NCBI GenBank assembly: GCA_010909165.1
Contig: VJWM01000108.1
Location: 930,001 to 994,000 of the forward strand
Length of the DNA stretch: 64,000 bases
From: Anthoceros angustus
Lineage: Eukaryota; Plantae; Anthocerotophyta
Direction of reading: 5' to 3'
Shown: in pieces, positions 9,701 to 57,291 of the stretch
Layout of the letters: each line of letters begins with the position of its first letter
Position numbering within the stretch: the first letter of the stretch is position 1
Translations under genes and position numbers: made by a program
Notes under the pieces: generated by a model
Seen by the model: the letters and a program-made list of their open reading frames with translations, nothing else
Told to the model about the DNA's origin: nothing
The model's database searches: none

Positions 9701-9702
9701 CT

Positions 9703-9722
9703 AGGTAGAAGAATAGGAAGGA
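9703..9722 (+). other. Polypurine tract (PPT) abutting the LTR
   Basis: aggtagaagaataggaagga lies immediately before TGTGA. Confidence 0.55.
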
Positions 9723-10748
9723 TGTGATGTAATCGACATCCTTCGAGGATAGACTTAGGTGAAGTTGCTAGAATAGAATTTACCAAGGACATAATAGACT
9801 TAGGTGCCGACATTAAATGTCAAGGTAGGAAATAATAGAATTGGAAAAGGTGACCGCAGAGGGTCACCCAAGGGAGGTTGTATGTGGAAGGCCTCCTATA
9901 AGAGGAGGAGGATTTCACAAAGTAAAGTATCATGTCTTGCGCCCACGCCACCTCGAGTCCTTTGCCATTACAGAGGAATTTCGTCAGGAGCCAACACATT
10001 CTGTAGAGAGGAAGTCGCGGTGGTCGGAGTGCTTGGTGGAGGACTTGCTCGCAAGTGCCTAAACGAGTTGCTCCCTTGTGAATGGTTGCCGTGAAATTGC
10101 TTTGCTTTGGGTGTGTGGCAAATGCCTGAGAACTCTCGGCTTGAGGGTAGACTACAGGAAAGACTGGAGGTTCTCGCCGTGTCAAACTCATAGCAACCGC
10201 CCAAGGAAGAACTTGCTGGTGGAGGCGACCTGTGTGCCAGCCGTAAGGGCGAGTCGAAACCAAGAAGCCCGAATCGAGGTTAGACTAGGAGGAAGAGGAT
10301 GAGGAGATGAGAAGATGAGTAGAGGATTAGAGGTGTAGGTGTTAGTGGAAGGCCACGTGCAGAGCCTAAGGGACGAATCCCAAATCAAGTAAACGAGCGC
10401 CCCGAGTGGAGAAGAGTAGTCTTAGAAGTAGGGACGAATCATGTGTGAACTGGGGTCCCCGCCCGTGGTAGGCTCTTTCACCGAGGCTGACCCGCAATTG
10501 TGTTGTGTCGCTAGGTCAAGTTTGGTCTTAGAAGTAGGGACGAAATCGCTGTGAACTGGGGTCCCCGGCGCCTGGTAGGCCTTTGTCACGAGGCTGACCC
10601 GCAATTGTTTTGTGTGTGGGTCGAGGTTGGCGATTTTCGAGCGGTGCAAGTGGTGCAGCCGTGAGAGGGAGAGTAGGGCGCCTTGCTTGTTGAGAAGGCC
10701 GAGAGTGTGCAGTAGCGATTGGTGACCACAAGGCCTCGAACTTTCACA
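9723..10748 (+). mobile_element. Probable 3' LTR (~1026 bp)
   Basis: Begins TGTGA and ends TCACA (5 bp inverted termini) and is preceded by a PPT. It contains a TATA-like cctcctATAAGaggagg palindrome (9892-9908) and an internal ~80-105 bp direct duplication (~10422 and ~10529). There is no second LTR in the window to confirm the boundaries. Confidence 0.55.
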
Positions 10749-10854
10749 CAAGTCTCATGGGACGAAACCCAACGACGGGCGACAATGGGATAAGTGTACG
10801 CTTATAGTGGGAGGACCCGGGAGTGCCCCGATTCTCCCTACCACACCGCAGACC

Positions 10855-36954: not shown

Positions 36955-37345
36955 AACACCGATCCTGCATGAACAAGACCCATCTAGGAACCGATGCACT
37001 GATGCGCGAATCCCTCACCACAATCTCTCGATTCTCAAGCCGTGACATGATTTTGGTGCCACTGCCGCAGCCATTGCACATGCGCAGTTCTGGTCACTAC
37101 CAAAGTTGTGCCATCCGTGTGCTCACCACTACACGACAAGGCGTTTCTGCATGCCCATACAACGCATCCTCCTTCTCGCCGACAAAGCCCTCAAGACTAA
37201 TTGCTTTGTGGCACATGGCCTCCTGCATCCTTCAACCCGAGTGCATACTTGTTAGCGTTCTCAAAATTGTCGCCTCTTCTCCCCTCATGAACTCGTGCAC
37301 CTGCTTCACTTCAATGCATGCCTTTGCAAGCTTCTTCACAAAGAC
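36955..37345 (-). pseudogene. DYW:KP deaminase-domain fragment, DRH-like type (copy 1, frameshifted)
   Basis: The minus strand reads KKLAKACIE..VHEF..EKEDALYGHAE..NxRMCNGCxSGTKIMSRLENREIVVRD..HRFLDGSCSC across several indels. No upstream PPR array is attached. Confidence 0.75.
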
Positions 37346-37699
37346 TGCTTTCTTCATGCCATTCCATGGTTGCGGCATCTCCGGGCAGATTGCCTTTTGA
37401 CGGCCCTACACACGACATCAGCAGCAACATCTCCGGATAGCAGCAACATTTTGGCGTCAGCCTTGACCACGGAGGCACTCAAGCACGAGGAAAAGCGGTT
37501 CATAAGTTCATTGTGCTTATCTCGCTTCTTTGGTCGTCTCCGCTTTGAAAAGGATCTAGAAGCTCTTACCACGCCGAGTGACTTGTGGAGTGAAGCAGGA
37601 TCTTGATTGACGCTACGCGATTCCGTTGACTGGATAATGGGTTCGCCAGCAGCTGTCGAAGATGCCCTCAAATCTTCTGACATATTTCCCGATGGACTC

Positions 37700-38095
37700 T
37701 CAACACCGATCCCTGCATGAACAAGACCCATCTAGGAACCGATGCACTCGATGCGAATCCCTCACCACAATCTCTCGATTCTCAAGCCGTGACATGATTT
37801 TGGTTACTCGCCGATCATTGCACATGCGCAGTTCTCGGTCACTACCAAAGTTGTGCCATCCGTGTGCTAGACCATACGACAAGGCCTCGCATCCTCCTTC
37901 TCCACCTTTAGACAAAGCCCTCAAGACTAATTCTGTTTGTGGCACATGGCCTCCTGCATCCTTCAACCCGGAGTGCATACTTGTTAGCGTTCTCAAAATT
38001 GTCAGCCCTCTTCTCCCCTACTGTGAACTCGTGCACCTCGTTCTTCACTTCAATGCATGCCTTTGCAAGCTTCTTCACAGCACCTGCTGCCTTTC
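37700..38095 (-). pseudogene. DYW:KP deaminase-domain fragment, DRH-like type ending DRC* (copy 2; HAE segment deleted)
   Basis: Reads RKAAGAVKKLAKACIEVK..GGHVPQTELVL..KIMSRLENREIVVRDSHRVHRFLDGSCSCRDRC*. The segment encoding LYGHAE that is present in copy 1 is missing. Confidence 0.75.
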
Positions 38096-38459
38096 TATGT
38101 ATCGTGGTGTGGAAGGAACGTAGAGACTTTACATTAAAAAAGCCTCAGGAAATCCCATCTACCTCGAGACAGTGACAAAGCAAAAGTCGTACGAGACTTG
38201 CACACGATGCTTTGCATAATTGAAGTGAGTAGAAATACAAACAAGACTGTCTTATGTCTTTCACGAAACGTCGCTAAAACCCTTTGCCTAATTTAGTGGG
38301 CTAGAGTTGCACTCTTTCACACTCCCACTCAGCTCTAGGCTCACTAAGGTTGCTTAAAGGACTCCTAAGTGACTTGACGATTGGATCTAATTCAGATTAG
38401 CTTCATCCACTCTCGCCACTTGGAAGCTCCCACTTAAGCTTGGAAAGTACTATTTTGTC

Positions 38460-38530
38460 GTTGACTTGGTGTAGTGGTTAGTTCTTCCATGCGAAAGATG
38501 GAGGTCGTGGGTTCGAATCCCGTTGGCGCG
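38460..38530 (+). promoter_or_regulatory. tRNA-derived segment with Pol III A box and B box (not a functional tRNA)
   Basis: A box TGGTGTAGTGG at 38467-38477. An anticodon-like hairpin TCCAT-gcgaaag-ATGGA follows, then a T arm GTGGG-TTCGAAT-CCCGT with B box GGTTCGAATCC at 38510-38520. The acceptor and D stems do not pair. Confidence 0.7.
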
Positions 38531-39037
38531 TTCTTCTGTGTTTTGCGAAAGGATGAAAGATAATAATAGGGTGTCAGGTCCAATCCTCGTCGCAGGCCAG
38601 TGTAATAGCCTACAGTGTCCACCTTACTGCCATACCTCTTTAAACTCAAGTGCAGTCTTCATTCTTATTCTCCAGATGTTATACTTAGTTCCGTTGGTTG
38701 GCGCGTTCTTCTGTGTTTTGCGAAAGGATGAAAGATAATAATAGGGTGTCGTCCAATCCTTGTCGCAGTGTAATAGCCATGTGTCCACCTTACTGCCATA
38801 CCTCTTTAAACTCAAGTGCAGTCTTCATTCTTATTCTCCAGATGTTATACTTAGTTCCGTTGGTTGGCGCGTTCTTCTGTGTTTTGCGAAAGGATGAAAG
38901 ATAATAATAGGGTGTCAGGTCCAATCCTTGTCGCAGGCCGGTGTAATAGCCTACAGTGTCCACCTTACTGCCATACCTCTTTAAACTCAAGTGCAGTCTT
39001 CATTCTTATTCTCCAGATGTTATACTTAGTTCCGTTG
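38522..39037. repeat. Three tandem copies of a ~175 bp unit
   Basis: gttggcgcgttcttctgtg...cttagttccgttg starts at ~38522, 38697 and 38863; the middle copy is ~9 bp shorter. Confidence 0.95.
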
Positions 39038-39809
39038 AATCGATCTCTAATCGACTCGATATGTTGTGTTAGTAGCCATTGCGAAGAAGTGTGTTAATAC
39101 CACCTTACTGTTGTGCGTGGGTGGGTTGAATTATGATTCTCACAAAGACCGGCCACAAGAACAACCTTCTAGGTATTTTAAGCTTCACATGAAGCCAATT
39201 CACCACCAATGACGTGACCTTCTCCGGGTGTGTCTTGTGGCTCCAAACGATGCTTAAGTTTTACCGCTTGAGTTTTCGTGGTGGAGGCGTCGGCTTCCAA
39301 CATTTAGGGTTTCCTCCCTCGGTTCGCAGCTCTCAAGCATAGAGATTACAAGATCAATCCTTTCATTGATCTCATTGAAACAATGAACCATTACTCTGGG
39401 ATTGATGTAAGGAGGCGCATCTCCTTGCCTGGGCAAGGTAAGGCCGTGTTGTTCCCGTGCTGCAATTTGGTTGTTAGGATTCTCCCAATGCGCATAATCG
39501 CCTTCTTTCACTAAGAATTTCAGAGACCCGCCCCGCCTGCTCCCTAGCACGGGGTACCCAATTTCGATGGGTAGTGACCCTCCCTTGATCACGCTGTGAA
39601 GGCACCCAATTCCTGTGAGAATTGTTATGGAATTGTTCCCTTGGCACCTGTGAAATGGGAGGGGCCACGCACCGTGCGCCTCTCCGTCTCCTATGCATTT
39701 TTTAAGTCAATTGGAGAAGCAGACAGCGCGCACGCGATGCGCAGCATCATAGGCATTGGCAGATCACGCATCCATAGATCATGGACATTCAGAGCCCATA
39801 CATCTGCCT

Positions 39810-39821
39810 GCTCTGATACCA
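39810..39821 (-). other. Primer binding site complementary to tRNA-iMet
   Basis: gctctgatacca is the reverse complement of TGGTATCAGAGC and is directly adjacent to the LTR. Confidence 0.9.
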
Positions 39822-40172
39822 AGTGACAAAGCAAAAGTCGTACGAGACTTGCACACGATGCTTTGCATAATTGAAGTGAGTAGAAATACAAACAAGACTG
39901 TCTTATGTCTTTCACGAAACGTCGCTAAAACCCTTTGCCTAATTTAGTGGGCTAGAGTTGCACTCTTTCACAGAGACGGAGGGAACAACCCTTTGGAGGA
40001 CACCAGGCCAAGGGGACTAGCCCGCCAGTCCCCGCGATCACCCATCCTGAAATTACCTACTGCTGCGAGGATGTCTCGGACCCCGTGATCGCCCATCCTG
40101 AGATCACCTTCTGCTCCGAGAATCACATGCAATCACAGCCACTGAGTATCAGTAGTTGCATAGTCAGTCTCC

Positions 40173-40395
40173 TTGGTCGGTCAGGTTATCTGGATGAGGC
40201 CCTCATGTACGAATGTGGCCGTGGGCTCGAAAGCTTTGCTGAGTGCTTGCAATAGCCACGGTGATGTAAAGCGTGGGCATCGATGCTTTGACCATCTTGT
40301 AGAGCTGGAACCAGAAAATTCAAGTGCGTATGTGTTGTTGGGTAGCATCTATGCTAAAGCAGGCTGGTGGGATGCTGTTGGTACAATAGAAAGAC
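40173..40395 (+). pseudogene. Isolated PPR S2/E1-E2 fragment
   Basis: Reads ALLSACNSHGDVKRGHRCFDHLVELEPENSSAYVLLGSIYAKAGWWDAVGTIE, preceded by LGRSGYLDEA in another frame. Confidence 0.8.
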
Positions 40396-40566
40396 AGAGT
40401 CTAGTTTTCTCCTGTCCCACTTCGTTTGAGCCTGTGCAGAATGATGGCCGAGCCATCCTTTTTTAAACATCCCTCGTTCCTTCATGGACTCCAGGATGCG
40501 GTGACTTGGGCTGCCATAAAAGAAGGGGTATTCCAAGCATAGCCTGGGGCAGAAGGTCCCCCCTCT

Positions 40567-42290
40567 CTGTGTTTCTGTGCAAGAAGAGGGCATTTGTGTG
40601 CAGCGGCGAGTGTGTGATATTCGTGTACCCGCCGCAATATGCAAGTGTGGCCGCTTCGCATCTTGGGAGGCAGCTAGCTACATGCAGTATGCAGTCATGT
40701 GGGTCTAGTGACGAAATGGCCGAAGGGTATCAACAGACAACACTGGATCACTTCCACGGAGGATCCCTCCAATGCACAAGCCTGGTGAATCTTCTGGGTC
40801 GAGCTGCAGAACTTGATGAGGCACTAGCTTTCATAACATCAAAGCCAAATTGCCTGATGCTGCCGTTTGGCACACCCTGTTGGCTGCTTGTCGAAAGTAG
40901 GGCACGGCACAAACCTTCGTCTTACAGCGGCCTCCTTCTTTTGGACCAATTTCCGACTACCACACGCAACAGTTCACCTTCCAGGGACTGCATAGGTTTT
41001 CTTCACTCTCACGGTCGACCCTTGCAACTGCAACAACCAGCTGCAAATCGATGCACACGGTACCCATCCCTTACGACAATGTCTCTCTTTTCAACCCTTG
41101 ACATGATCTCCGTGGAATTGTGGCAGTCACTGCACATGCGTAGATTCTTGGTTACCACCAGAGGTGTGCCACTCGGAGTGTTCAAGAGACCAAACGCCAG
41201 AGCTAGCTTCTCAGCATGCCCGCAAAGCGCATCTTCCTTTTCCTTCTCACCAAGTGGCTTCAACACCAACTTCGTGTCAGGCACATGGCCCCCTTCCTGC
41301 TTCAGACGTGCACTCATACTCTCCACCTTGAGCGCAAGATCATCTCTGTTTTCCCCCACCACAAATGTATGTACCTGCTTCTTCACCTCAATGCTCGACA
41401 CTGCAGGTTTCTTGTTCGCTCCAGCTACCATTCTCTGTGTTTCTGTGCAAGAAGAGGGCATTTGTGTGCAGCGGCGAGTGTGTGATATTCGTGTACCCGC
41501 CGCAATATGCTGCTTCGCATCTTGGGAGGCAGCTAGCTACATGCAGTATGCAGTCATGTGGGTCTAGTGACGAAATGGCCGAAGGGTATCAACAGACAAC
41601 ACTGGATCACTTCCACGGAGGATCCCTCCAATGCACAAGCCTGGTGAATCTTCTGGGTCGAGCTGCAGAACTTGATGAGGCACTAGCTTTCATAACATCA
41701 AAGCCAAATTGCCTGATGCTGCCGTTTGGCACACCCTGTTGGCTGCTTGTCGAAAGTAGGGCACGGCACAAACCTTCGTCTTACAGCGGCCTCCTTCTTT
41801 TGGACCAATTTCCTGACTACCACACGCAACAGTTCACCTTCCAGGGACTGCATAGGTTTTCTTCACTCTCACGGTCGACCCTTGCAACTGCAACAACCAG
41901 CTGCAAATCGATGCACACGGTACCCATCCCTTACGACAATGTCTCTTTTCAACCCTTGACATGATCTCCGTGGAACTGTGGCAGTCACTGCACATGCGTA
42001 GATTCTTGGTTACCACCAGAGGTGTGCCACTGGAGTGTTCAAGAGACCAAACGCCAGAGCTAGCTTCTCAGCATGCCCGCAAAGCGCATCTTCCTTTTCC
42101 TTCTCACCAAGTGGCTTCAACACCAACTTTGTGTGAGGTACATGGCCCCTTCCTGCTTCAGACGTGCACTCATACTCTCCACCTTGAGCGCAAGATCATC
42201 TCTGTTTTCCCCCACCACAAATGTATGTACCTGCTTCTTCACCTCAATGCTCGACACTGCAGGTTTCTTGTTCGCTCCAGCTACCATTCT
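40567..42290. repeat. ~870 bp tandem duplication covering the DYW domain and 3' flank of PPR gene 1
   Basis: 40567-41434 is repeated at 41435-42290; the marker tctgtgtttctgtgcaagaagaggg occurs at both starts. Confidence 0.9.
41009..41431 (-). CDS. Stand-alone intact DYW:KP (GRP-type) domain ORF created by the duplication
   Basis: Reads MVAGANKKPAVSSIEV..CGHAEKLALAFGL..LRMCSDCH..HRFAAGCCSCKGRP* with no frameshift. Expression is unknown. Confidence 0.55.
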   Translation of the reverse strand: MVAGANKKPAVSSIEVKKQVHTFVVGENRDDLALKVESMSARLKQEGGHVPDTKLVLKPLGEKEKEDALCGHAEKLALAFGLLNTPSGTPLVVTKNLRMCSDCHNSTEIMSRVEKRDIVVRDGYRVHRFAAGCCSCKGRP

Positions 42291-44162
42291 CTGCGCTTCA
42301 ATCTTCTCTGCATCGTTCCACCTACCTGCATCTGCATAGGCATTGGCCATGAGCACATATGGCGATGCACTCTGAGGTTCCAGTTTCACCAGACTTTCAA
42401 AACAACGCGTCGCCCTCTCTATATCCCCGTGACTCTTGCAGGCATTCAGCAAGGACGTCAACCCCACAACATTGCTTTGGTCCTCACATGATAATAGAAT
42501 CTTCTCCGCCCCATCTAAATGGCCTGCACGCCCAAGAAGATCAATCATGCAACTGTAATGCTCAATAGTAGGTTTGATGCCATGATCGTCCATGGAGTTG
42601 AAGTGCTTGAGGCCCTCATGCACCAGCCCCTCATGACTGCAAGCTGCTAAGAGGCAAGTAAAAGTAGTATCGTCAGGCCGAATACCGGCGACTAACATCT
42701 CTTCAAAACAAGCTCTTGCGGTGTGACCTCTATCACAAGTACCATACCCAGCTATCAAAGCATTCCATGTCACCACATTCTTGGTGGACAAGCTGTCAAA
42801 AACCTGGCGTGCAACTTCCAGCTCGCCACATTTTGCATACAAGTCCACCAGGCAGGTTCCTAACACAACGTTATCTAGCAGTCCTCTTTCGACAATCTGT
42901 GAGTGCAGCTGCCTGCCCTTCTGTAAGGCACCAGTGGTTGCACAGGCCTTCAGAAGGCAAGCGAAAGTAACATCGTCAGCCACAAAGAGGCCCTCTTGCA
43001 CCATTTGTCCATACAAAACAAGCGCCTCTTGGCCGAGTCCTTGCTGAGCATACCCAGCTATCAGGGCATTCCATGTCACCACATCCTTTGTGGCCAAACT
43101 GTCAAAAACCTGGCGTGCATCTTTCACTTCGCCACATTTGGCATACATGTCCACCAGGCAGTTTCCAACAAACATGTCGGGAGGAATGCCACTCTGCAAC
43201 ACATCACAGTGCACTTTTCTGCCAGATTCCAAGTCGGCAGCAAATGCACAAGCTTGAAGGGAAGCTACAAAGACGTGGGCAGTCGCCTTCACTCCTGACC
43301 TCCGCATCTCATGGTACAGTTGTACGGCCTGTTCAGGTTTCCCATGCTGAGTGTATGCGGAGATCATGGAAAACCACATGAAGGCATCTGGTCTGCCCAC
43401 CCTGGTGAACACGTCCATGGCCTCCTGCAGCCTACCTCCAGATGCATACATGCGCAGGATATGGTTCCCCAAGTATGAATCCCACTCGTACCCAAGTTTA
43501 ACAATGAGCTCATGAACACGTCGTCCCACTACCAGATCCTTCTTAGCTGCACACTGTTTTAGCACAGTGTAAATCAGAGACTGAGAAATAGCAAACTCAG
43601 TCTGCGCCAGAAATTCCAGGGCTCCAACGGCCTCAGAAAGCTTCCCCTGCTGACATAATGCGATCACAGTCACAGCCGTCACGGCGCCCATTTTCGATGC
43701 TGCATGCGTGCCAGGTTCAGGATTATCCGGAGAGATCGACTTGGAAGGAGAAACACCTTGACCCATCACAATATCCAAAGAAACGAGCTGCTCATCAACC
43801 CAAGCTGGCTTGAGCATGCTGTTCAACCACAGGACTTCCCCGGACACCTTGTGCCGGAAGTCAGGCGAACGGGAGCTCTTCTTATCTTTTCTGTTGTCCC
43901 ACCACATGGTAGGGTCCAGAAAAAATCGTTCCCACAAGTGCTCCTGCTCCTGGAGACGACCATCACTGGAGAATCCCTCCCCACCCACAAGTTTTCTCGG
44001 AAGTGGAAGTGCTGGGCTCCTGACACTGCTGCACCTGGAGGATTGGTTGTTTGCCACTGGGTGACTCCCTTGAGTGAGATGAGCGGGAGCTCCTCGTAGA
44101 ATCCCTGGAGAGACACCAATTTGCTGGGTCCAAAACGGGTCTGGTTGCCAGACTGTGACCAT
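41869..44162 (-). CDS. PPR gene 1: PDF motif + 11 PLS-class PPR motifs + E1-E2 + DYW:KP(GRP); candidate organellar (U-to-C) RNA-editing factor
   Basis: Starts MVTVWQPDP and continues WWDNR..PDFRHK..LWL, L-S-(PLS)x2-P2-L2-S2, E1/E2, KKPAVSSIEV. Three small deletions in the DYW part (~42145, ~42030, ~41945), relative to the adjacent duplicate, break the frame. These may be sequencing errors. Confidence 0.88.
43788..43945 (-). other. OSB-type PDF motif (gene 1)
   Basis: HLWERFFLDPTMWWDNRKDKKSSRSPDFRHKVSGEVLWLNSMLKPAWVDEQL follows the recalled OSB pattern LW..FF.NP..WWDNR..K.NP..PDFKHK.TGEALWL....P.W. Confidence 0.8.
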
Positions 44163-44517
44163 CGTCCGGGGACCGCTGTGGGAAGACGGCACAAGGCACA
44201 ACAAACTATGCAGGATGCGTAGACATGCATGACCACACCACCGTGACGACGGTTTGTTGTTAGGTGCGCATGGCGTAGGACACCAAAACAAAATGGAACA
44301 GGGGTTGCCTAAGGTGGTTGTCAAATGGGTGTCATGACTTTGGACAAAAAGTTTAGAGGAAGCAAGCTCAACGAATTGTCCCCAGTTTACAAAAGCACCA
44401 GTGTCGTGATCCTAGATGCTAGTCTGGTCATTCCTCCCTCTAAGCTTGTGTTGGATGCCCTGCTTCATCCCTCTTCCATCGGAGGGTTTTGGTCATGAAC
44501 GGATCGGCATTGACAGG

Positions 44518-44595
44518 TTTCACGGATCTATAGACTTTTCACGGATCCATCAGAGGCCTTTTAACGGATCCATCAGGTTTCGCGGATCCATCAGA
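44518..44595. repeat. Four degenerate ~20 bp repeats (tttcacggatccatcag) upstream of gene 1
   Basis: Four consecutive cggatc(c/t)at cores are visible. Confidence 0.7.
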
Positions 44596-45055
44596 TGCCT
44601 GCCCTTCCCTTCCCTTCCCTTCCGGAACTTCAAGTCCAGGGAGGCAAGCCACTCAGAGGTTCCATGGCAATGGTGCAGGCGGAGCAGTTCCGTGCTGCTG
44701 CGGGAAAATGTTCCGCTCTTCCACTCGCGCAAGTGCAAGAGCGCAGATCCGGAATGACAAGGGAGCGGCAAGGGCAGCAGGCTCCGATTTTTCCAGGATC
44801 CTCAGACCGGTGGGCGATACACCGGACAAAAGGATAGCGTCGTTCCAGCTTGCAATCACATGTACGGGAGGAGACTCATTCGATTCTCATGAACTATCTG
44901 CGTTGTGACAGGAGTGCATCAGTGTTTGCGATCGTGTCCATGTCTCAGTTTGGACAGGGATGGCGAGCACATGAATGGCCAGCACATTCACCTCCGAGGA
45001 AAAAAGGAACGTTCCTGGCGTAGATACTTCACAACTAGCTACTTCTTCATTATTC

Positions 45056-48000
45056 TCACGGTCGGCCATTACAACTGCAACAACCATTTGCGAATCGATG
45101 AACACGGTACCCATCCCTTACAACAATGTCTCTCTTTTCAAGCCTTGACATGATCTCCGTGGAACTGTGGCAATCACTGCACATGCGTAAATTCTTCGTT
45201 ACCACCAGAGGTGTGCCACTCGGAGTGTTCAAGAGACCAAACGCCAGAGCCAGCTTCTCAGCATGCCCACAAAGCGCATCTTCCTTTTCCTTCTCACCCA
45301 GCGGCTTCAACACCAACTTTGTGTGAGGTACGTGGCCTCCTTCCTCCTTCAGACGGGCATTCGTGCTCTCTACCTTGAGAGCAATATCTTCTCTCCTTTC
45401 TCCCACCAGAAATCTATGCACCTGCTTATTCACCTCAATGCTTGCCACTGCAGGTTTCTTGTTAGCCCCTGCTACCATTCTCTGTGCTTCAATCCTCTCT
45501 ACGTCGGTCCACCTACCTGCATCTGCGTAGGCATTGGCCATGAGCACATATGCAGGCGCCCATTGAGGGTCCAGTCTGACAAGGCTGTCAAAGCACCGCA
45601 TCGCCCTCTCCAGATCCCCGTGACTTTTGCAGGCATTCAGCAAGGACGTCAATCCCACAACATTGCTTTGGCCCTTGCAAGATAAGAGCATGTTCTCAGC
45701 CTCATCTAACAGGCCTGCACGCCCAAGAAGATCAATCATGCAATTGTAATGCTCCGTAGTAGGTTTGATCCCATGCTGTTCAGCGATGGACTCAAAGAGC
45801 TTACGACCCTCATCTACCAGTCCTCATGACTGCATGCTACTAAAAGGCAAGTAAAAGTAGCACCATCAGGCTGAATACCGGCAACTAACATCTCCTCAAA
45901 ACAAGCTAGTGCTCTGTGACCATCATCACAAGTACCATACCCAGATATCAGGGCAGTCCATGTCACCACATCCTTCGTTGCCAAGTTGTCAAAAACCTGG
46001 CGTGCATCTTCCATTTCACCACATTTTGCATACATGTCCACCAGGCAGTTGCCCAACACTACATCATCCAGCAGTCCTCTTTCAACAATCTGTGAGTGCA
46101 GCTGCTTGCCCTTCTGTAAAGCACAGGTGCTTGCACAGGCCTTCAGAAGGCAAGCAAAAGTAACATGGTCAGCCAAAATGAGGCCTTCTTGCTCCATTTG
46201 CCCATACAGAACAAGTGCGTCTTGGCTGAGTCCTTGCTCTACATACCCAGCTATCAGGGCGTTCCATGTCACCACATCCTTAGTGTCCACGCTGTCAAAA
46301 ACCTGGCGTGCATCTTCTAGTTCACCACATTTTGCATACATGTCCACCAGGCAGTTGCCCAACACTACATTATCCAGCAGTCCTCTTTCGACAATCTGTG
46401 AGTGCAACTGCCTGCCCTTCTGCAAGGCACCAGCGCTTGCACAGGCCTTCAGAAGGCAAGCAAAAGTAGCATGGTCAGCCACAATGAGGCCATCTTGCTC
46501 CATTTGTCCATACAGCATAAGCGCCTCTTGAACGAGTCCTTGCTGTCCATACCCAGCTATCAGGGCATTCCATGTCACCACATCCTTTGTGGCCAAGCTG
46601 TCAAAAACCTGGCGTGCATCTTCTAGTTCACCACATTTTGCATACATGTCCACCAGGCAGTTGCCCAACCCTACATTATCCACCAGTCCTCTTCCGACAA
46701 TCTGTGAGTGCAGCTGCATGCCCTTCTGTAAGGCACCAGTGCTTGCACAGGCCTTCAGAAGGCAAGCAAAAGTAACATGGTCAGCCAAAATGAGGCCCTC
46801 TTCCTCCATTTGTCCATACAGAACGAGCGCCTCTTTGCCGAGTCCTTGCTGTGCATATCCAGCTATCAGTGCATTCCATGTCACCACATCCTTTGTGGCC
46901 AAGCTGTCAAAAACCTGGTGTGCATCTTTCAGTTCGCCACATTTGGCATACATGTCCACTAGGCAGTTGCCCACCAGCAGGTCATGCAGCAGTCCTCTTT
47001 TGAGGATCTCTGAGTGCAGCTGCCTGCCCTGCCGTAAGGCACCAGTGCTTGCACAGGCCCTCAGAAGGCAAGCAAAAGTAACGCAGTCAGCCAAAATGAG
47101 GCCATCTTGCTCCATTTGTCCATACAGAAGAAGCGCCTCTTGGCCGAGCCCTTGCTTTGCATATCCAGATAACAGTGCATTCCACGTCACCACATCCTTC
47201 GTGGCCAAGCTTTCAAAAACCCTTCGAGCACATTCCAGTTCACCAAATTTTGCATACATGTCCACTAGGCAGTTAGCAACCAGTATGTTATCTAGCTGCC
47301 CTCGTTCTACGATCTGTGAGTGCAGATGCCTGCCCTTCTGTAAGGCACCTGTGCCTGCACAAGCTTTCAGAAGGCACGCAAAAGTAACATGGTCAGCCAC
47401 AATTAGACCCTCCTGCTCCATTCGTTCAAACACAACAAGCGCCTCTTGCCCAAGCCCTTGCTGTGCATACCCAGCAATCAGCGTCGTCCATGTCACCACG
47501 TCCTTTTTGCCCAAGCTTTCAAAAACCCCTCGTGCGCATTCGAGTTCACCACATTTTGCATACATGTCCACCAGGCAGTTGCCTACCAGTATGTCGTCGA
47601 GCTGCCCTCGTTTTACAATCTGTGAGTGCAGATGCCTGCCCTTCTGTAAAGCACCAGTGCTTGCACAGGCCTTGAGAAGGCAAGCAAAAGTAACTCGGTC
47701 ACCCACAATCAGGCCCTCCTGCTCCATTCGCTCGAACACAACAAGCGCCTCTTGCCCGAGACCTTGCTGTGCATACCCAGCAATCAGCGCAGTCCATGTC
47801 ACCACATCCTTTGTGGCCAAGCTTTCAAAAACCTGGCGTGCATCTCCCAGTGCTTTACACTTTACATACATGTCAACAAGGCAGTTTCCAACGAACAAGT
47901 CAGGAGGAATGCCACTCTGCAAAACATCACCGTGCACTTTTCTTCCTGATTCCAAGTCGGCGGCAAATGCACAAGCTTGAAGGGCAGCTACAAAGACGTG

Positions 48001-48885
48001 GCCATCCGCCTTCACTCCTGACCTACGCATCTCATGGTACAGTTGTATGGCCTCGATTGGTTTCCCGTGTTTAGCATGTGAAGAGATTATGGAGAACCAC
48101 ATGAAGACATTTGGTTTTCCCACCCTGTTGAACACATCCATGGCCGCCTGCAGCCTACCTCCAGATGCATACATGCGCAAGATATGGTTCCCCAAGTATG
48201 GATCCGACTCGTACCCAAGTTCGACAACGAGGTCATGAACTCGTTGCCCCATAATCAGATCCTTCTTAGCTGTACACAGTTTTAGCACAGTGTAAACCAG
48301 AGACTGAGAGATAGCAGAGTCTGTCTGCGCCAGAGATTCCAAGGCTCCAACGGCCTCAGAAAGCTTCCCCTGCTGACATAACGTGTGCACGGTTACAGTC
48401 GTTACGGCGCCCATTTCCGATCCTGCAAGCCTCCCACGTTTAGGATTATCCACAGAGCTCGACTTGGAAGGAGAGGCACGTTGACCCATCAGCATATCCA
48501 AAGAAACGAGTTGCTCATCAACCCAAGCTGGCTTGAGCGTGCTGTTTAACCACAGGACCTCGCTGGACCCCTTACGCCGGAAATCAGGCGCACGGGAACT
48601 CTTCTTATCTCGTCTGTCGTCCCACCACATGGTAGGCTCCAGAAAAAATTGTTGCCACAAGTGCTCCTGCACCTTGCGAGCACCATCGGTGGAAAATTCG
48701 CCCCCACCCACACAGTTTCTGGCAAGTGGAAGTGCTGGGCTCGATACACTGCTGCACCTGGAGGCTTGGTTGTTTGCCACGGGTAGACCCCCTAAGGTGA
48801 GGTGAGCGGGAGCTCCTCGTAGAACCCCTGGAAACACACCAATTTGTTGGGTCCAGACCGGATCCGGCTGCCACACTGTGGCCAT
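45056..48885 (-). CDS. PPR gene 2: PDF motif + 26 PLS-class PPR motifs + E1-E2 + DYW:KP(GRP); candidate organellar (U-to-C) RNA-editing factor
   Basis: A 1023 aa ORF (L-S-(PLS)x7-P2-L2) and a 227 aa ORF (S2-E1-E2-KKPAVASIEV..HAEKLA..CSDCH..CSCNGRP*) are joined by one apparent 1 bp frameshift near 45822 (HEDW instead of HEGLV). Confidence 0.92.
48510..48665 (-). other. OSB-type PDF motif (gene 2)
   Basis: HLWQQFFLEPTMWWDDRRDKKSSRAPDFRRKGSSEVLWLNSTLKPAWVDEQL. Confidence 0.78.
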
Positions 48886-49249
48886 AGTTCAGGGGGCGCT
48901 GTCGGAAGATGAGGCTAACAGCAAACAAGAAGAGCGCAGAGACTTTGTAGATATGCTGAGATGGGACGTCTCATCTGCAAACTACCTGTGTATGTATGGC
49001 AGGATGCCCAGGTACGTGCCTTGGATCGTGGATGACTAGCACCACTCTCAAGAGCTTTTTATCATCCCAGGTAAAAGAGACCAAAACAAAACACTTCAAA
49101 CAGGAGGGGCCACCACCAAGTGCGTTGGACCGTGCGTGTATGTCCAAGCAAGTTGTCGGTTGGAAAGGGGATGAAAAATGCGTTCCCAATCAACAGAATG
49201 CGTGACCTCAAACGACCACACTAGGATCAAACCCAAAATCTCTGGTTTC

Positions 49250-49860
49250 GTAGAACAGCGCCTTATGAGGTGGTTGGATTGTACGAGCAATCCAACCACC
49301 TCATCAAACGTTGGTTGATTGTCACTTGGACGTATTGCTACGGATGCCCGTATAGGACAATAAAAATTGCTACAGGATGGTGACAAACTACTCAGCAGCA
49401 CCAGTGATCACCTTGCCCTCTGAAGGTTTGAACTCTGCCTCCCTCGTTTGATCAACCAAGCTTTTCAACTTGTTGACATGTTGAACGGTGTCGCCCTCAG
49501 CCATCTTACACTACGAGTCAATTCTCCAATTTCATGAAGTTGGAGAATTGACTTTCCAGCATCATTTCGCTCACAATGCTCTTCTTCTCGTATGTTATGT
49601 AAAGAATTTTCCATGCATCCTGCGAAGAGACATACTCGCTCAATTGTGAGAGAAGGTCATCTGACACATTCAGGATAATATTAGCCAAGGCTTTCGTCTC
49701 TTTGTCTATACCCTTTTCAGAAGCGCCATCTGGAAGTCCATTTTTCACAAACTTCCACAACCCTTTGTCAATGAGAAAAGATTTTCGCTTCAACTTCCAT
49801 AATGTGAAGTTGCTGCCATCAGACTTCTCTACTTGACGCGTAGTCTCCATATGCATGCCT
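49250..49860 (-). pseudogene. Ty1/copia gag N-terminal relic (UBN2/Retrotran_gag_2-like)
   Basis: Reads EKSDGSNFTLWKLKRKSFLIDKGLWKFV..KALANIILNVSDD..SSQDAWKIL..YEKKS, then HVNKLKSLVDQ after a frameshift. Stops are present, and no LTR or PBS was seen. Confidence 0.8.
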
Positions 49861-50189
49861 TTGGCAGCCATGCGAAGACAAGACAAAAGTTCCTCGCACC
49901 AAAACTACTACCAAGCTTCATGAAATTGCAAACAAGCTTTCACAGACACTTAGTCTGCATAACTACAAACAATGCAATAGAAGACAAGTCATGCTATCAT
50001 CACCTTCTCTAAAGTCACATCACACTGCAGTTGCATCAGCTGAAATTTTGAGATAAAAAAAATCTCAGCATGGAACAGGTCTTGGCCTCACCTTGCAGCT
50101 TCCTCTTCTTTTTTTAAAATTTACCTTGAGTATTGAAAATTTAGCGATGAGTATTTATTAGTACTAAAATGTGCTTAAATTTAACGGTG

Positions 50190-51520
50190 AGTATAGACGG
50201 TGCTAAATTTTAATGAGTATAGACGGGTGCTAAATTTTAATGTTCGGCATTGGTGGCCCGATTGATAAGTAAATTTTACCTTAATATAACATAAATTATA
50301 ACAGTATAAACCCTATAAACATAAATATAAGTATAAACCCTATAAACATAAATATAACTAATAGTAAACTATTATATTATATAGTATAGCATAATATCAC
50401 GGAATACGTTTAGGAGTACTTGGTAAGGGGCAAGGGGTAGAAGTTATGTTGGAGTGCATGAGTAAGATCACGGAATACGTTTAGAAGTACTTGGTAAGGG
50501 GCAAGGGGTAGAAGTTATGTTGGAGTGCATGAGTAAGACCAAGGGTTAGAAGTTATGCTAGAGACCAAGGGGTAGAATGACGGCATGGTGTGTGTTAACA
50601 AGTAAAAACAATTGAAGCCCCAAAAACGGTGTAGTTATGAGGTTGGAGTGAGAGGTAAGAGTTGCAGTTCCATGTTACAATGATGTTGCAATTCTGCTAC
50701 GGGCAACATAAACAAATTTATACTTGTTAATAGAGGGGTGTAATGAAGAGGGGAGGGTGAGAGGAGAGAGACGGGGCTCCATGTTATTGTCATATTGCAA
50801 TTCTTGTGTGGGTAACATAAACAAATGATTGTTTACAGAGGGTTGTAATGAAGAGTGCAACGTGGGAGGAGAGAGAGGGGGCTCCATGTTACAATAATGT
50901 TGCAATTGCATGTGGAAATGATAAAAAAAGGGGTTGTGATAGAGGGGGTGTATTCATGAGGGTAAGGTGGGAGGAGAGAGAGATAGATTCTTGTTAAGAG
51001 TACTACGATTTGAGGAAATAAGTCACAAATTTAATACCAAGCCTCTAGAGCATGTTGCAATTTGGAGGTGTAACAAAAAATTGCAACATCGACTATAACA
51101 TAGTCAAGAATTTCTAGTAGGGGTCATCGTGTGAAGGGATTGTTGTTGCGAGTGTGAGGGTGTATATAGAAGCCGCAGTTTTGAGTGGCTAGGTTTGCCG
51201 TGGGCGGTGCTCAATGAGAAGACGGGTTGGTGGAGTAGTAGACTACGTTGGAACGTGTAAGGGAGCAATTTAGGGTCAATGGTTATTGGAAAGCGTTCGA
51301 TTATATACTGGGTTCAACACATAGTGGACGGTGGTGTTCTGTTATATAATGGGTTCAACACATATTATGTACCACCGGTGGTGTTCGGTTATATATTGGG
51401 TTCAACACAAATTGTGATCATTATTCCGTGACTCGTTATTTGGCGTGGTTGTAAGCAGGAGTGTGGTTTCTTATACTTGTGATTCGTAAAGTGTGCTTCT
51501 AGTAAAGTGTGCTTCTAGCA
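50190..51520. repeat. Patch of short tandem duplications
   Basis: A ~27 bp unit x2 (50303-50357), a ~71 bp unit x2 (~50396-50536), a degenerate ~110-120 bp unit x3 (~50660-51000), a ttatata.tgggttcaacac motif x3 (~51300-51410) and a 16 bp unit x2 (~51487-51518). Confidence 0.7.
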
Positions 51521-53448
51521 GAGTAGAGTGTGTAAGACGTACGTGCTTGCCATTCCCGTCTCTGTGTGGTCATCAGTTGTAGATTCAAGTGGCCATTCCA
51601 ATAAGTTAGTTTGTCGAAAGATTGTTTTAAGACTATACTTCAAGGTTGTTTAAGTAAGACTACATTTCAAGCTTGTTTTTGAAGGTAGTTAGTAGTTTTC
51701 CTTTTTTTGCAAATAGTGTGAATTTCTTCCTTTCATATGAAGCACATAAGGAGGCTTTATTGTGAGTTGATTTTATTCCTTTTCTCAATGGCTTTACAAA
51801 CCTAGGCTTCTTTATATAATATGAATTTTTATAATACATATTTTTCTTCCTATAATAGAACTCCTTTACAATTCATAATAACACAAATTTTTATCATTAC
51901 AATAGAATTGGTTTACCATGTAGACTTTCAACCTACAAAATAAATTTATATAATTTAAAGTTTAAATATAATAATAAAAATTTTACAACATAATTAGTTA
52001 TAACATAAAGCCTAAAACATATCATATTACCGCCAACATTTTAAAATTTCCAACCAATTTATGAAGGACCCTTACGGACTGCCGATTTCCCGAACTTGCA
52101 TCTGTTAGCTCAATAGTTCAGGTGGACAAACTCTCCTCTACTTCTACATGTACATAGAACAAACTTCGACCTGAACAAGCTTTGCCCTCAATGTTTAGAA
52201 TGATCTCCCTCACACCGTGCGATGGTCAAGAGGTAGAGCACCTTTCCTCGATTAGGAAGCATCTTTGATCTGATTGTTGAGCAAAAAATATGCCCACGTG
52301 GACAAATAGGGCTGAGCATCCTCACAAGAAATTGGCCAGATCTGCAGAGGCTAGCCATGTCAAAACATTTTTCAATCGATGAAATCCGACCTCAAAACTA
52401 ACCAGCAGTGGGCACTCAAGTCGTGCCCACCCATTACTTCAGTCCCATTACTTCAGTTGCGACCAGCAACTGGCCACTCCCCCAACCTGTCTAACCTACT
52501 GTCGCTCCTCGTGTGTGTGCAAGATGGAAAGCGCATGATCCCAAGGTAGTCTCACGTAATTTCATAGCATCTTTCAAAATCTTTCCTATTCATCGGGCCT
52601 ACAAGGCCATGAAGATGGCTGGTGGTTTCATCGGGCTGAGAAGGCGGGGTCGGCATTCGTGGGACCCCTAAGCTCTTGGCCCTTTACTGGGTTGTCCTCT
52701 CCATTCGACATAAATGAATTTTCCCATCTCTTCTTTTTAATAAAATCTCCATTGAACCCAAATCCAGACCAAAAAAATTCAATGGCCACGCAAGAAGGAC
52801 GAACGATTCAAAATGAGTCCAATTCGTCCTTATGGAGTTGAAAAGTGGAAGCAAGTTGGCAGGTGCAGGGTGTAGGCGGCAAACTTGATTCAGAAACTAC
52901 CACCGTATGGCAGGGACACCGGGAAATGGGAAATGGGAAATGGAGAGCACCGGTCTTGGGCGAGTGCCCGGATAATGGGACCCACTGCTTATTAGCTCTG
53001 GCGCCAAAGATCTACATGGCCAACTGGAATGCACTTCAAAACGCTACACTTGTCAAGGAGACAGTGCACTGATATTTGACCTGGTTCCAAGAATGCCCAC
53101 AAGGCCAGACTATGTATGTGCATATGAACATGCATATGTATACATATATGTACATGTGTCCATCCATAGTCTGCAGTCATAAGGGTCTAGTGAGAGAGGA
53201 CGGGAGTACTTTGAGGGTTTGCGCCGACAACACTCTTGACCTTCCATGGAGAACCACTGCACATATGTACGTGTTGGGTCTTCTGGGCCGAGCAGCAGAA
53301 CTTGATGAGTTACTAGCTTTCACAACATCAAAAAAGTTACCTGGGGCACAGCAGAGTCCTTTGTAGAATGGCGCCCATCTCCCATTAAAATGACTCCCAA
53401 CTCCCACATCAAACAGTTCACTTTCCACTGGCTAGTTCTTCTTCACTC

Positions 53449-56400
53449 TCACGGTCGACCCTTACAACTGCAACCACCAGCTGCGAATCGATGCACACGG
53501 TACCCATCCCTTACAACAATGTCTCTCTGTTCAACCCTGGACATGATCTCGGTCGAACTGTGGCAGTCACTGCACATGCGTAGATTCTTGGTTACAAGCA
53601 GAGGCGTGCCACTGGGAGTGTTTAAGAGACCAAACGCCAGAGCTAGCTTCTCAGCATGCCCGCAAAGTGCATCTTCCTTTTCCTTCTCACCCAGCGGCTT
53701 CAGCACCAACTTCGTGTGAGGTACGTGGCCCCCTTCCTGCTTCAGACGTGCACTCATACTCTCCACCTTGAGCGCAAGATCATCTCTGTTTTCTCCCACC
53801 ACAAATGTATGTACCTGCTGCTTCACCTCAATGGTCGCCACCGCAGGTTTCTTGTTAGCTCCTGCTACCTTTCTCTCTGTTTCCATCCTCTCTACATCGG
53901 TCCACCTACCTGCATCTGCATAGGCATTGGCCATGAGCACATAAGGCGATGCACCTGAGGTCCAGCTAACAATGCTTTCAAAACACCACATCGCCCTCTA
54001 TATCCCCGTGACTTTTGCAGGCATTCAACAAAGACGTCAACCCACAACATTACTTTGGCCCTCACATGATAACAGCATGTTCTCTGCCTCATCTAAATGG
54101 CCTGCACGCCCAAGAAGATCAATCATGCAATGTAATGCTCAATAGTAGGTTTGATGCCATGCTGTTCAGCCATGGAATCAAAAGTGCTTGCGACCCTCAT
54201 GGACCAGTCCTCATGACTGCATGCTAAAAGGCAAGTAAAAGTAGTATCATCAGGCTGAATACCAGCGACCAACATCTCTTCAAAACAAGCTACTGCGTTG
54301 TGACCTTTATCACAAGCACCATACGCAGCTATCAAAGCTGTCCATGTCACCACATCCTTTGTGCCCAAGCTTTCAAAAACCTGGCATGCATCTTCCAGCT
54401 CACCACACTTTGCATACATGTCCACCAGGCAGTTGCCCAACACTATGTTATCCAGCTGTCCTCTTTCGACAATCTGTGAGTGCAGCTGCCTGCCCTTCTG
54501 CAGGGCACCAGTGCTTGCACAGGCCTTCAGCAGGCAAGCAAAAGTAACATCATTAGCGACAGACCGACCCTCTTCCTCCATTTGCGCATAGAGAACAAGC
54601 GCCTCTTGGCCAAGTCCTTGCTGTGCATACCCAGCTATAAGGGCATTCCATGTCACCACATCCTTTGTGGCCAAGCTATCAAAAGCCTGGCGTCCTTCCT
54701 GCTTCAGACGTGCATCTTCCACCTTGAGCGCAATATCCTCTTTTCTCCCACCACAAATGTATGTACCTGCTGCTTCACCTCAATGGTCGCCACTGCAGGT
54801 TTCTTGTTAGCTCCTGCTACCTTCTCTGTGTTTCAATCCTGTCTACATCGGTCCACCTACCTGCATCTGCATAGGCATTGGCCATGAGCACATAAGGCGA
54901 TGCACTCTGAGGCTCAAGTCTAACCAGACTTGCAAAACAACGCGTCGCCCTCTCTACATCCCCATAACTTTTGCAGGCAGTCAGCAAAGATGTCAACCCA
55001 ACAACATTGCTTTGGCTCCCACATGATAACAGCATGTTCTCTGCCTCATCTAAATGGCCTGCACGCCCAAGAAGATCAATCATGCAACTGTAATGCTCAA
55101 TAGTAGGCTCAATGCCATGCTGTTCAGCCATGGAATCAAAATGCTTGCGACCTTCATGCACCAGCCCCTCATGACTGCAGGCTGCTAAAAGGCAAGTAAA
55201 AGTAGTATCATCAGGCTGAATACCAGCGACCAACATCTCTTCAAAACAAGCTACTGCGTTGTGACCTTCATCACAAGCACCATACCCAGATATCAGGGCT
55301 GTCCATGTCACCACATCCTTTGTGCCAAGCTGTCAAAAACCTGGCGTGCATCTTCCAGTTCACCACATTTTGCATACATGTCCACCAGGCAGTTGCCCAA
55401 CACTATGTTATCCAGCAGTCCTCTTCACAATCTGTGAGTGCAGCTGCCTGCCCTTCTGTAAGGCACCAGTGCTTGCACAGGCCTTCAGAAGGCAAGCAAA
55501 AGTAACATCATTAGCCAAAATGAGGCCCTCCTGCTCCATTTGTCCATACAGAACAAGCGCCTCCAAGTCCTTGCTGCATACCCAGCAATCAGGGCATTCC
55601 ATGTCACCACATCCTTTGTGGCCAAGCTGTCAAAAACCTGGCGTGCATCTTCCAGTTCACCACATTTTGCATACATGTCCACCAGGCAGTTGCCCACCAG
55701 TAAGTCATCCAGCAGTCCTCTTTGACAATCTGTGAGTGCAGCTGCCTGCCCTTCTGTAAGGCACCAGTGCTTGCACAGGCCTTCAGAAGGCAAGCAAAAG
55801 TAACATGGTCAGCCAAAATGAGGCCCTCCTCCATTTGTCCATACAGACAAGCGCCTCTCCGCCTTGCTGTGCATACCCAGCTATAAGGGCATTCCATGTC
55901 ACCACATCCTTTGTGGCCAAGCTATCAAAAGCCTGGTGTGCATCTTTCAGTTCGCCACATTTTGCATACATGTCAACTAGGCAGTTGCCCACCAGTAAGT
56001 CATGCAGCAGTCCTCTTTTGACAATCTGTGAGTGCAGCTGCCTGCCCTTCCGTAAGGCACCAGTACTTGCACAGGCTTTCAGAAGGCAAGCAAAAATAAC
56101 ACGGTCAGCCAAAATGAGGCCCTCTTCCTCCATTTGTCCATACAGTACAAGCGCCTCTCCGCCGCGTCCTTGCTGTATATACCCATCAATCAGGGCCGTC
56201 CATGTCACCACATCCTTTGTGGCCAAGTTGTCAAAGGCCTGGCGTGCATCTTCCAATTCGCCACATTTAGCATACATGTCAACCAGGCAGTTTCCGACAA
56301 ACAAGTCGGGAGGAATGCCACTCTGCAACATATCACAGTGCACTTTCCTGCCAGAGTCCAGGTCGGCAGCAAATGCACAAGCCTGAAGGGCAGCTACAAA

Positions 56401-57291
56401 GACATGACCATCCGCCTTCACTCCTGACCTCCGCATCTCATGGTACAGTTGTATGGCCTCATTAGGTTTCCCTTGCTTAGCGTATGCAGAGATAATGGAA
56501 AACCACATGAAGACGTTTGGTTTCCCCACCCTGGTGAACACATCCATGGCCTCCTGCAGCCTACCTCCAGATGCATACATGCGCAAGATATGGTTACCTA
56601 AGTATGTATCCGACTCGTACCCAAGTTTGACAGCGAGATCATGAACTCGTCGCCCAGCAACCAGATCCTTCTTAGCTGTACATAGTTTCAGCACAGTGTA
56701 AAACAGAGACTGAGAAATAGCAGAGTCTTCCTCCGCCAGAGATTCCAGGGCTCCAACGGCCTCAGGAAGATTCCCCTGCTGACATAGCGCGCTCACGGTC
56801 ACAGCCGTTACGACGACCATTTCCGATCCTGCAAGCCTGCCAGGTTCAGGCTTATCCAGAGAGCTCGACTTGGAAGGAGAGGGACCATGACTCATCTGCA
56901 TATCCAAAGACACGAGCTGCTCATCAACCCAAGCTGGCTTGAGCATGCTGTTTAACCACAGGACCTCTCTAGACCCCTTATGCCGGAAGTCAGGCGAACG
57001 GGGGCTCTTCTTATCTCGTCTGTTGTCCCACCACATGGTAGGCTCCAGAAAGAATCGTTGCCACAAGTGCTCTTGCTCCTGGCGACGACCATCGCTGGAA
57101 AACCCCTCCCCACCCACGCATTTTCTCGGAAGTGGAAGTGCTGGGCTCTCCTCTCTCCTGCACCTGGAGACTTGGTTGTTTGCCAGGGGAGGACTCCCTA
57201 AGGTGAGGTGAGCGGGAGCTCCTGGTAGAATCCCTGTACACCCACCAATTTTCTGGGTCCACAACGGATCCGGTTGCCATACAGTGGCCAT
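53449..57291 (-). CDS. PPR gene 3: PDF motif + ~17 PLS motifs + E1-E2 + DYW:KP(GRP), with a duplicated C-terminal block and many frameshifts (pseudogene or assembly error)
   Basis: Starts MATVWQPDP at 57291 and is open to ~55870, then frameshifted. P2-L2-S2-E1-E2 and the DYW start lie at ~55314-54690. The sequence then jumps back into an S motif, followed by P-L-S-P2-L2-S2-E1-E2 and a full DYW ending CSCKGRP* at 53449. Confidence 0.8.
56917..57072 (-). other. OSB-type PDF motif (gene 3)
   Basis: HLWQRFFLEPTMWWDNRRDKKSPRSPDFRHKGSREVLWLNSMLKPAWVDEQL. Confidence 0.8.

Follow-up and report, generated by a model that had tools for sequence, protein, structure and literature searches.

The window analysed here is a 64,000-nt stretch of the Anthoceros angustus genome (GenBank assembly GCA_010909165.1, contig VJWM01000108.1, positions 930,001–994,000), and it contains three minus-strand genes, g1, g2, and g3, that encode pentatricopeptide repeat (PPR) proteins with a conserved block ahead of the repeats. 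In the usual scheme, a PLS-class PPR editing factor consists of a transit peptide, a PPR array, and an E/DYW tail, and the factors of seed plants need separate helpers such as the MORF proteins. By its sequence and its modelled fold, the block in g1–g3 is a genuine PDF domain of the type found in OSB proteins, which bind single-stranded DNA (ssDNA).

Layout of the three genes

The first in-frame methionine lies at 44162 in g1, 48885 in g2, and 57291 in g3. The continuous open reading frame (ORF) has 681 residues in g1 (735 when counted from an upstream TTG), 1023 in g2, and about 500 in g3. From the methionine through the PDF domain into the PPRs the frame is unbroken in 3/3 copies, and the initial annotation had correctly placed the domain in the same ORF as the PLS PPR array, followed by E and GRP-ending DYW:KP sequence. 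The block begins at residue 74–75 and ends about 35 residues ahead of the first PPR-like helix pair. Pfam recognizes PPR families (E 1e-39 to 1e-124) and the E_motif (1e-11 to 1e-14) in these ORFs, and no Pfam model matched in their first ~200 residues. That the block occurs on the minus strand in all three paralogs stands as annotated, but only in g3 was the 52-aa interval given for it in frame; the g1 interval is off by 2 nt at its end, and the g2 interval by 1 nt. Similarly, of the PPR numbers first given as 11, 26, and ~17, about 11–12 fits the length of g1 and ~26 is consistent with the g2 array, whereas the ~17 of g3 do not form one array. At 45936–47886, a 306-bp unit equal to one PLS triplet is repeated 6.4 times in tandem within the g2 array, with 87% identity. 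A long antisense ORF at 46589–47980 is a by-product of this repeat.

The three copies are 87–88% identical in the PDF block and 75–77% identical over the N-terminal 165 residues. Because the whole N-termini are recent duplicates, conservation of the block among the three is weak evidence when taken alone. The synonymous divergence (dS) among g1–g3 is 0.2–0.4, and the ratio of nonsynonymous to synonymous divergence (dN/dS) between paralogs is 0.19–0.52 in the PDF, 0.26–0.49 in the first PPRs, 0.33–0.67 in the presequence, and 0.9–2.3 in the 34-residue linker (small counts). Judged from these codon comparisons, the PDF domain was under purifying selection in the past and the linker was not.

An intact protein of 753 aa, P0089, is 52% identical to g1 over the full length and has the same layout, with a PDF, an equal number of PPRs, E1/E2, and a DYW:KP domain with a GRP end. 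In its full-length model, residues 1–74 and the linker at 142–159 have a predicted local distance difference test score (pLDDT) below 50, and the PDF and the PPR superhelix are folded. In this layout the presequence comes first, the PDF follows as a folded unit, and a flexible tether leads to the PPR array.

The block as an OSB-type PDF domain

The consensus of the block in g1–g3 is EHLW..FFL(E/D)PTMWWD(N/D)R.DKKS.R.PDFR.K...EVLWLNS.LKPAWVDEQL, and the consensus of 92 aligned PDF domains is E.LWQ.FF.NP..WWDNR..K.NP..PDFKHK.TGEALWL.S...P.WV..QL..LD. All invariant and nearly invariant columns of the 92-sequence alignment are kept in g1–g3. Moreover, each of the 17 positions with at least 80% conservation in non-PPR PDFs is present both in g1–g3 and in the PPR-linked PDFs of other species. 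A profile built from the three window copies and searched in 1.84 billion representative proteins gave 697 matches at E≤1e-3, including 207 at E≤1e-10. Named OSB proteins among them are Populus OSB1 (1.3e-23), Euphorbia OSB3 (3.4e-22), and Anthurium OSB3 (6.2e-16), and the majority of the matches are proteins of 250–500 aa with 1–5 C-terminal PDF copies. Scored with the three-copy profile, the g1 PDF reaches 140.7 bits, and the profile of 92 PDF sequences gives it 93.5 bits.

The AlphaFold2 model of the g2 region 48484–48681, made with the 92-domain alignment, has a pLDDT of 94.3. The modelled fold comprises a helix at 2–14, strands at 19–21, 34–36, and 42–43, and a second helix at 54–65. A Foldseek search of AFDB Swiss-Prot returned significant matches only to the PDF regions of AtOSB1–4, with template modelling (TM) scores of 0.72–0.88 and a root-mean-square deviation (rmsd) of 0.8–1.3; the best match was OSB1 183–244 (TM 0.88, rmsd 1.2 Å, 43% identity). 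OSB-type proteins were also returned from the AFDB clusters. The assignment to the OSB PDF motif made in the initial annotation is therefore borne out by the profile comparison it had called for, in which named OSB1 and OSB3 proteins match at E values of 1e-16 to 1e-23, and by a fold match confined to AtOSB1–4. No solved relative of the domain was found by PDB sequence search, by Foldseek on the PDB, or by a wide VIA search (best Z 3.8). The helix-strand-strand-strand-helix order was also considered as resembling a double-stranded RNA-binding domain, and this reading gained no support from the structure searches. An ESM Atlas feature search gave only sub-threshold phage clusters, and word-index protein searches with the N-terminus of the window proteins found no match in a collection that lacks the proteins of this genome and of its close relatives.

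The AFDB cluster search also contained two PDF-fold matches without an OSB name, A0A7S2HFR7 and A0A3M1NXI7, with TM scores by query of 0.82 and 0.65 and identities of 22% and 30%, respectively. The style of the two accessions points to a protist transcriptome and a bacterial metagenome bin as their sources. From these model-based matches, the PDF fold may occur outside land plants.

The PDF motif of OSB1–4 and the window domain are the same domain of ~50–60 aa with the signature W..FF.NP..WWDNR..K..P.PDF(K/R)HK...E.LWL....P.WV. However, the position of the domain differs. In OSB proteins the PDF is C-terminal and follows an OB-fold-like domain, whereas the window proteins have a single PDF N-terminal to the PPR array. 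As whole proteins, g1–g3 fall outside the OSB family, with ~65–73 disordered residues ahead of the PDF and PPR repeats behind it. They are not OSBs because there is no room upstream for the OB-fold-like part, the place of which is taken by ~65 disordered residues, and because PPRs follow.

PDF-PPR proteins in other plants

The best 150 of the 697 profile matches were inspected, and the taxonomic range given here is based on these. N-terminal PDFs followed by PPR repeats were present in 11 of the 150 representatives, which come from Adiantum, Ceratopteris, Pteridium (a transcriptome ORF), Selaginella, Diphasiastrum, and three further assemblies. A word search seeded with a Diphasiastrum PDF recovered at least 62 protein clusters of that species, all of them PPR proteins annotated as hypothetical. 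Among these clusters and the best 150 matches, every PDF-PPR protein that could be placed taxonomically belongs to a seed-free plant. The proteins of Diphasiastrum complanatum, Selaginella moellendorffii, Adiantum capillus-veneris, and Ceratopteris richardii have the same order of parts as the window genes, with 1–3 PDFs and optional E/DYW domains, and their PDFs are 32–53% identical to the window copies.

These relatives differ from the window genes in the catalytic domain. Diphasiastrum proteins carry 1–3 N-terminal PDFs and some are without a DYW domain; where it is present, the domain has a PG box, HxE, CxxCH, and a terminal DYW, which is the canonical C-to-U type. The fern and Selaginella members are without DYW. 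In contrast to the PG/DYW domains of these relatives, the DYW-family deaminase domains predicted in the window (g2 and the second piece of g3) are of the KP/GRP type, with KKPAV, GHAEK, CSDCH, and a GRP* end. The link of the PDF to U-to-C chemistry drawn in the initial annotation is not supported, because PDF proteins of Diphasiastrum have a canonical C-to-U DYW domain or none. In seed-free plants, the PDF is an accessory of PLS-type PPR proteins in general and is not specific to DYW:KP proteins, and the PDF-PPR family of these plants is old and large and takes in C-to-U DYW proteins and DYW-less proteins.

PDF copy number is 1–3 in PPR proteins and reaches 13 in other proteins. The tree of the 92 PDFs is unresolved, and PPR-linked PDFs group in it beyond chance (7 changes versus 13.3 in shuffled sets), a pattern that fits one origin of the fusion or several. 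In seed plants, PDF motifs were seen beside unrelated domains in P0047, a Coptis chinensis kinesin of 1526 aa, and P0048, a Striga hermonthica ICR2 of 1063 aa. In both cases, an OSB gene and the gene next to it have probably been merged into one gene model.

The view that the architecture lacked an earlier description agrees with the literature search, in which no paper on a PDF-PPR fusion was found in full text, with the original OSB paper (Zaegel 2006) and Gutmann et al. 2020 outside its coverage. The fusion is unmentioned in two surveys from 2026, one of OSB evolution and the other a kingdom-wide account of domain fusions in editing factors, and in a PPR review from 2024. The proteins themselves are already public and sit in databases as hypothetical proteins.

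Frame breaks and copy number

The gene parts are listed in Table 1. The three genes are recent tandem duplicates that were later disabled by frameshifts and rearrangement, and none of them has a single uninterrupted frame from the PPR array to the DYW domain, so they are not the working paralogs that had been proposed. The g1 frame ends prematurely at 'LKQEGAMYLTQSWC*'. Compared with three paralogous DYW regions that are otherwise ~95% identical, the g1 DYW region lacks 1, 1, and 2 nt at ~42149/50, 42031/32, and 41946/47, and these deletions shift it into other frames. In g2, the stop 'CSHEDW*' results from a 1-nt deletion (a missing G) at ~45821/22, within 'CSHE|GLV' and before E1, and paralogous contigs have exactly one extra base at this point. 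The g2 continuation contains a KKPAVA box, HAE, CSDCH, and a GRP* end, and is matched by the Pfam models DYW_deaminase (1.6e-33) and E_motif (7.5e-13). g3 is a chimera in which a PDF-PPR-E1-E2 piece with several frame breaks extends up to ~54737 and is joined by a second partial gene at 54722–53449 with PPR, E, DYW:KP (PF14432 at 5.1e-33), and a GRP* end. The 1-nt deletion at CSHE|GLV is identical in g2 (45821–45837) and the second piece of g3 (54208–54224); in the latter, a 1-nt insertion 28 nt downstream compensates, and the frame returns after 10 garbled residues.

Assembly error was considered as the cause of the frameshifts and rejected. Random error is disfavoured because g2 and the second piece of g3 share their deletion and because an exact 46-nt contig from an independent DNA run spans the first deletion of g1.

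Table 1. Parts of the three PDF-PPR genes and an adjoining fragment, in window positions
Feature	Positions	Strand	Basis
g1 PDF domain, 60 aa, EQEHLWERFFLDPTMWWDNRKDKKSSRSPDFRHK...PAWVDEQLVSLDI	43770-43949	-	translation, alignment
g1 open frame from Met: presequence, PDF, linker, ~11-12 PLS PPR, E1/E2	42117-44162	-	ORF list, Pfam
g1 DYW:KP remnant, out of frame, terminal GRP-stop	41873-42149	-	three-frame translation, paralog DNA alignment, tblastn
g2 PDF domain	48493-48672	-	translation, alignment, profiles
g2 open frame from Met, 1023 aa: presequence, PDF, linker, ~25-26 PPR	45814-48885	-	ORF, Pfam, repeat analysis
g2 continuation, different frame: remainder of L2, S2, E1, E2, DYW:KP	45056-45823	-	Pfam, frame map
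g3 PDF domain	56899-57078	-	translation, alignment, profiles
g3 open frame from Met, ~500 aa: presequence, PDF, linker, PPR, then frame loss	55783-57291	-	ORF, Pfam
g3 downstream pieces in several frames	53449-55782	-	Pfam, tblastn frame map, site comparison
E2-DYW:KP fragment without N-terminal part, just downstream of g1	41009-41548	-	tblastn with P0089 C-terminus, DNA alignment

Between 7,000 and 25,000 paralog contigs pile up on the window at 90% likeness, and at 99% likeness the coding parts are covered by short unitigs only. The family to which g1–g3 belong is very large and young, because thousands of near-identical paralog contigs are present.

In the unique spacer between g1 and g2 (44117–45064), seven 1-nt gaps appear in the contigs of one DNA run. 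A second run of the same sample, whose RNA label is a guess, gave contigs identical to the window over 44027–44801. The gaps are read as noise of the one run and not as assembly error. Since the second run matches the spacer, either this run contains DNA or the 5' region of g1 and the spacer are transcribed.

Proposed role of the PDF domain

The GRP subgroup of DYW:KP editing factors has been described from hornworts, and U-to-C editing has been demonstrated only for its designer consensus versions, such as KP2 and KP3 (PMC9478123). The window genes share with these PLS-class factors the PLS triplets, E1/E2, the KKPA box, HAE, CxxCH, and the C-terminal GRP. In contrast to them, the window genes add a folded N-terminal PDF, and frame breaks bar a full protein in all three. 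With moderate confidence, the intact members are read as having the four-part PDF-PPR-E-DYW:KP design of an old family in which the PDF acts as an accessory single-strand clamp on the 5' side. A disordered presequence of ~65–73 aa comes first and is followed by a self-folding PDF of ~60 aa (helix, three short strands, helix) that is homologous to the ssDNA-binding OSB motif. Next, a fast-evolving Ser/Pro-rich linker of ~35 aa forms a flexible tether to the fourth part, which consists of the PLS-class PPR array, E1/E2, and the GRP-type DYW:KP domain. The order of repeats in a PPR protein follows the bound nucleic acid in the 5'-3' direction (PMC13041630), and the N-terminus of the array on RNA would point toward the RNA 5' end. 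Because of this polarity, the tethered PDF may clamp the single-stranded transcript immediately 5' of the PPR footprint, whatever its sequence there. Such a clamp could raise the on-rate or affinity and keep the site unstructured. The PDF motif of AtOSB1 is enough for ssDNA binding (PMC6963530), and in the moss PPR56, RNA upstream of the PPR footprint affects editing (PMC10482289). The PDF would be accessory, and catalysis would not need it; this fits because designer GRP-type DYW:KP proteins without a PDF perform U-to-C editing in Escherichia coli (PMC9478123).

Several points weigh against the 5' clamp. All three local copies are broken, and present function is therefore not shown by this locus. 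The read comparison gave no copy-specific coverage or expression, as thousands of paralog contigs with 90–99% identity mask these loci. The range of the fusion, including its absence from seed plants, comes from the best 150 of 697 matches and is provisional. Nucleic-acid binding by any PPR-linked PDF would be carried over by analogy from the PDF of AtOSB1. Finally, OSB1 and OSB2 favour ssDNA over double-stranded DNA or RNA (PMC4166229), and therefore a DNA tether fits at least as well as an RNA clamp.

This DNA tether is the main rival and is a serious though unlikely possibility. The PDF would keep an OSB-like ssDNA preference and hold the editing factor at the nucleoid, on the non-template strand, R-loops, or replication intermediates, so that editing would be co-transcriptional. 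Apart from the preference of OSB1/2 for ssDNA over RNA, the reading draws on ssDNA binding by the isolated AtOSB1 PDF motif, on the retention of all OSB-conserved residues in PPR-linked PDFs, and on the flexible linker, which would give reach. Nevertheless, PPR-DYW factors that carry no PDF, designer as well as native ones, are able to edit free transcripts in E. coli.

A broader and rather improbable form of the same idea places the PDF in seed-free plants, which lack MORFs, as a built-in helper of PLS-type editing factors that would tie editing to ssDNA in the transcription bubbles or R-loops of nucleoids and make both C-to-U and U-to-C editing co-transcriptional. At its extreme, some of the enzymes might act on ssDNA. 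MORF genes occur only in seed plants, whereas all taxonomically placed PDF-PPR proteins come from seed-free plants. RRM-PPR and RRM-DYW fusions have been reported (PMC13386178). Like the ORRM and MORF/RIP proteins, they share the idea of an extra RNA-binding or helper module for a PPR editor, but the domains are unrelated to the PDF.

The PDF might instead be a protein-protein module for oligomerisation or for docking to OSB or other PDF-carrying proteins, with no part in nucleic-acid binding. AtOSB2 is a tetramer (PMC6963530), and the varying PDF copy number is like that of interaction repeats. On the other hand, the function published for the motif is to bind ssDNA, and its conserved residues include Trp, Phe, Arg, and Lys, which typically stack on bases or contact phosphates. 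This explanation is therefore doubtful.

It is very unlikely that the block has no function in the mature protein, either because it is lost with the transit peptide or because it is a decaying relic of a pseudogene family. The pseudogene-like state of all three local copies and the position of the block inside the first 135 residues agree with such a loss. However, the PDF is a confidently folded domain in the models and has been under purifying selection when the adjoining linker has not, and its key residues are kept across the GRP-type plant, ferns, and lycophytes, which include intact annotated proteins and a transcript. An artefact, in which misassembly or a merged model of the Coptis and Striga kind attached the PDF of a neighbouring OSB gene to a PPR gene, is already contradicted and can hardly be true, as no stop or frame change lies between PDF and PPRs in three separate copies, the upstream space is too small for an OB-fold, and the layout recurs in 62 Diphasiastrum clusters, three fern genomes, Selaginella, and a Pteridium transcriptome ORF.

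A conserved, folded N-terminal domain of the ssDNA-binding type, present on dozens to hundreds of such factors in ferns, lycophytes, and a plant whose DYW:KP genes are of the GRP type, would be an overlooked component of editing in seed-free plants. It gives a directly testable handle on how single-polypeptide editors locate and hold their sites and on whether an added PDF could improve synthetic PPR base editors. The fusion likewise extends the PDF domain beyond OSB proteins, and at this locus it is represented by decayed copies only.

Other features of the window

In the presequence-coding region, the minus-strand frame that lies +2 to that of the genes contains the stretch 'DPENWWVYRDSTRSSRSPHLRES...' at 57140–57262, 48773–48853, and 44053–44133. 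It matches PDF profile positions 14–52 weakly, with 11.4 bits and an E value of 0.014 for the six-frame set, and the three copies do not count as independent evidence. Since relatives carry 1–3 PDFs, this sequence may be what is left of a first PDF copy after a frameshift.

The fragment just downstream of g1 is 56% identical to the C-terminus of P0089 by tblastn. More DYW:KP-type fragments without N-terminal parts lie at 40154–40391 on the plus strand and 37004–38096 on the minus strand, and the cluster at 36967–41548 is a graveyard of partial copies. At the other end of the analysed DNA, positions 1–12000 contain no ORF of at least 250 aa and no tandem repeat. This region has a purine-rich strand bias, with a GC content of 0.53–0.56, a GC skew of +0.14 to +0.19, and an AT skew of +0.2 to +0.34.

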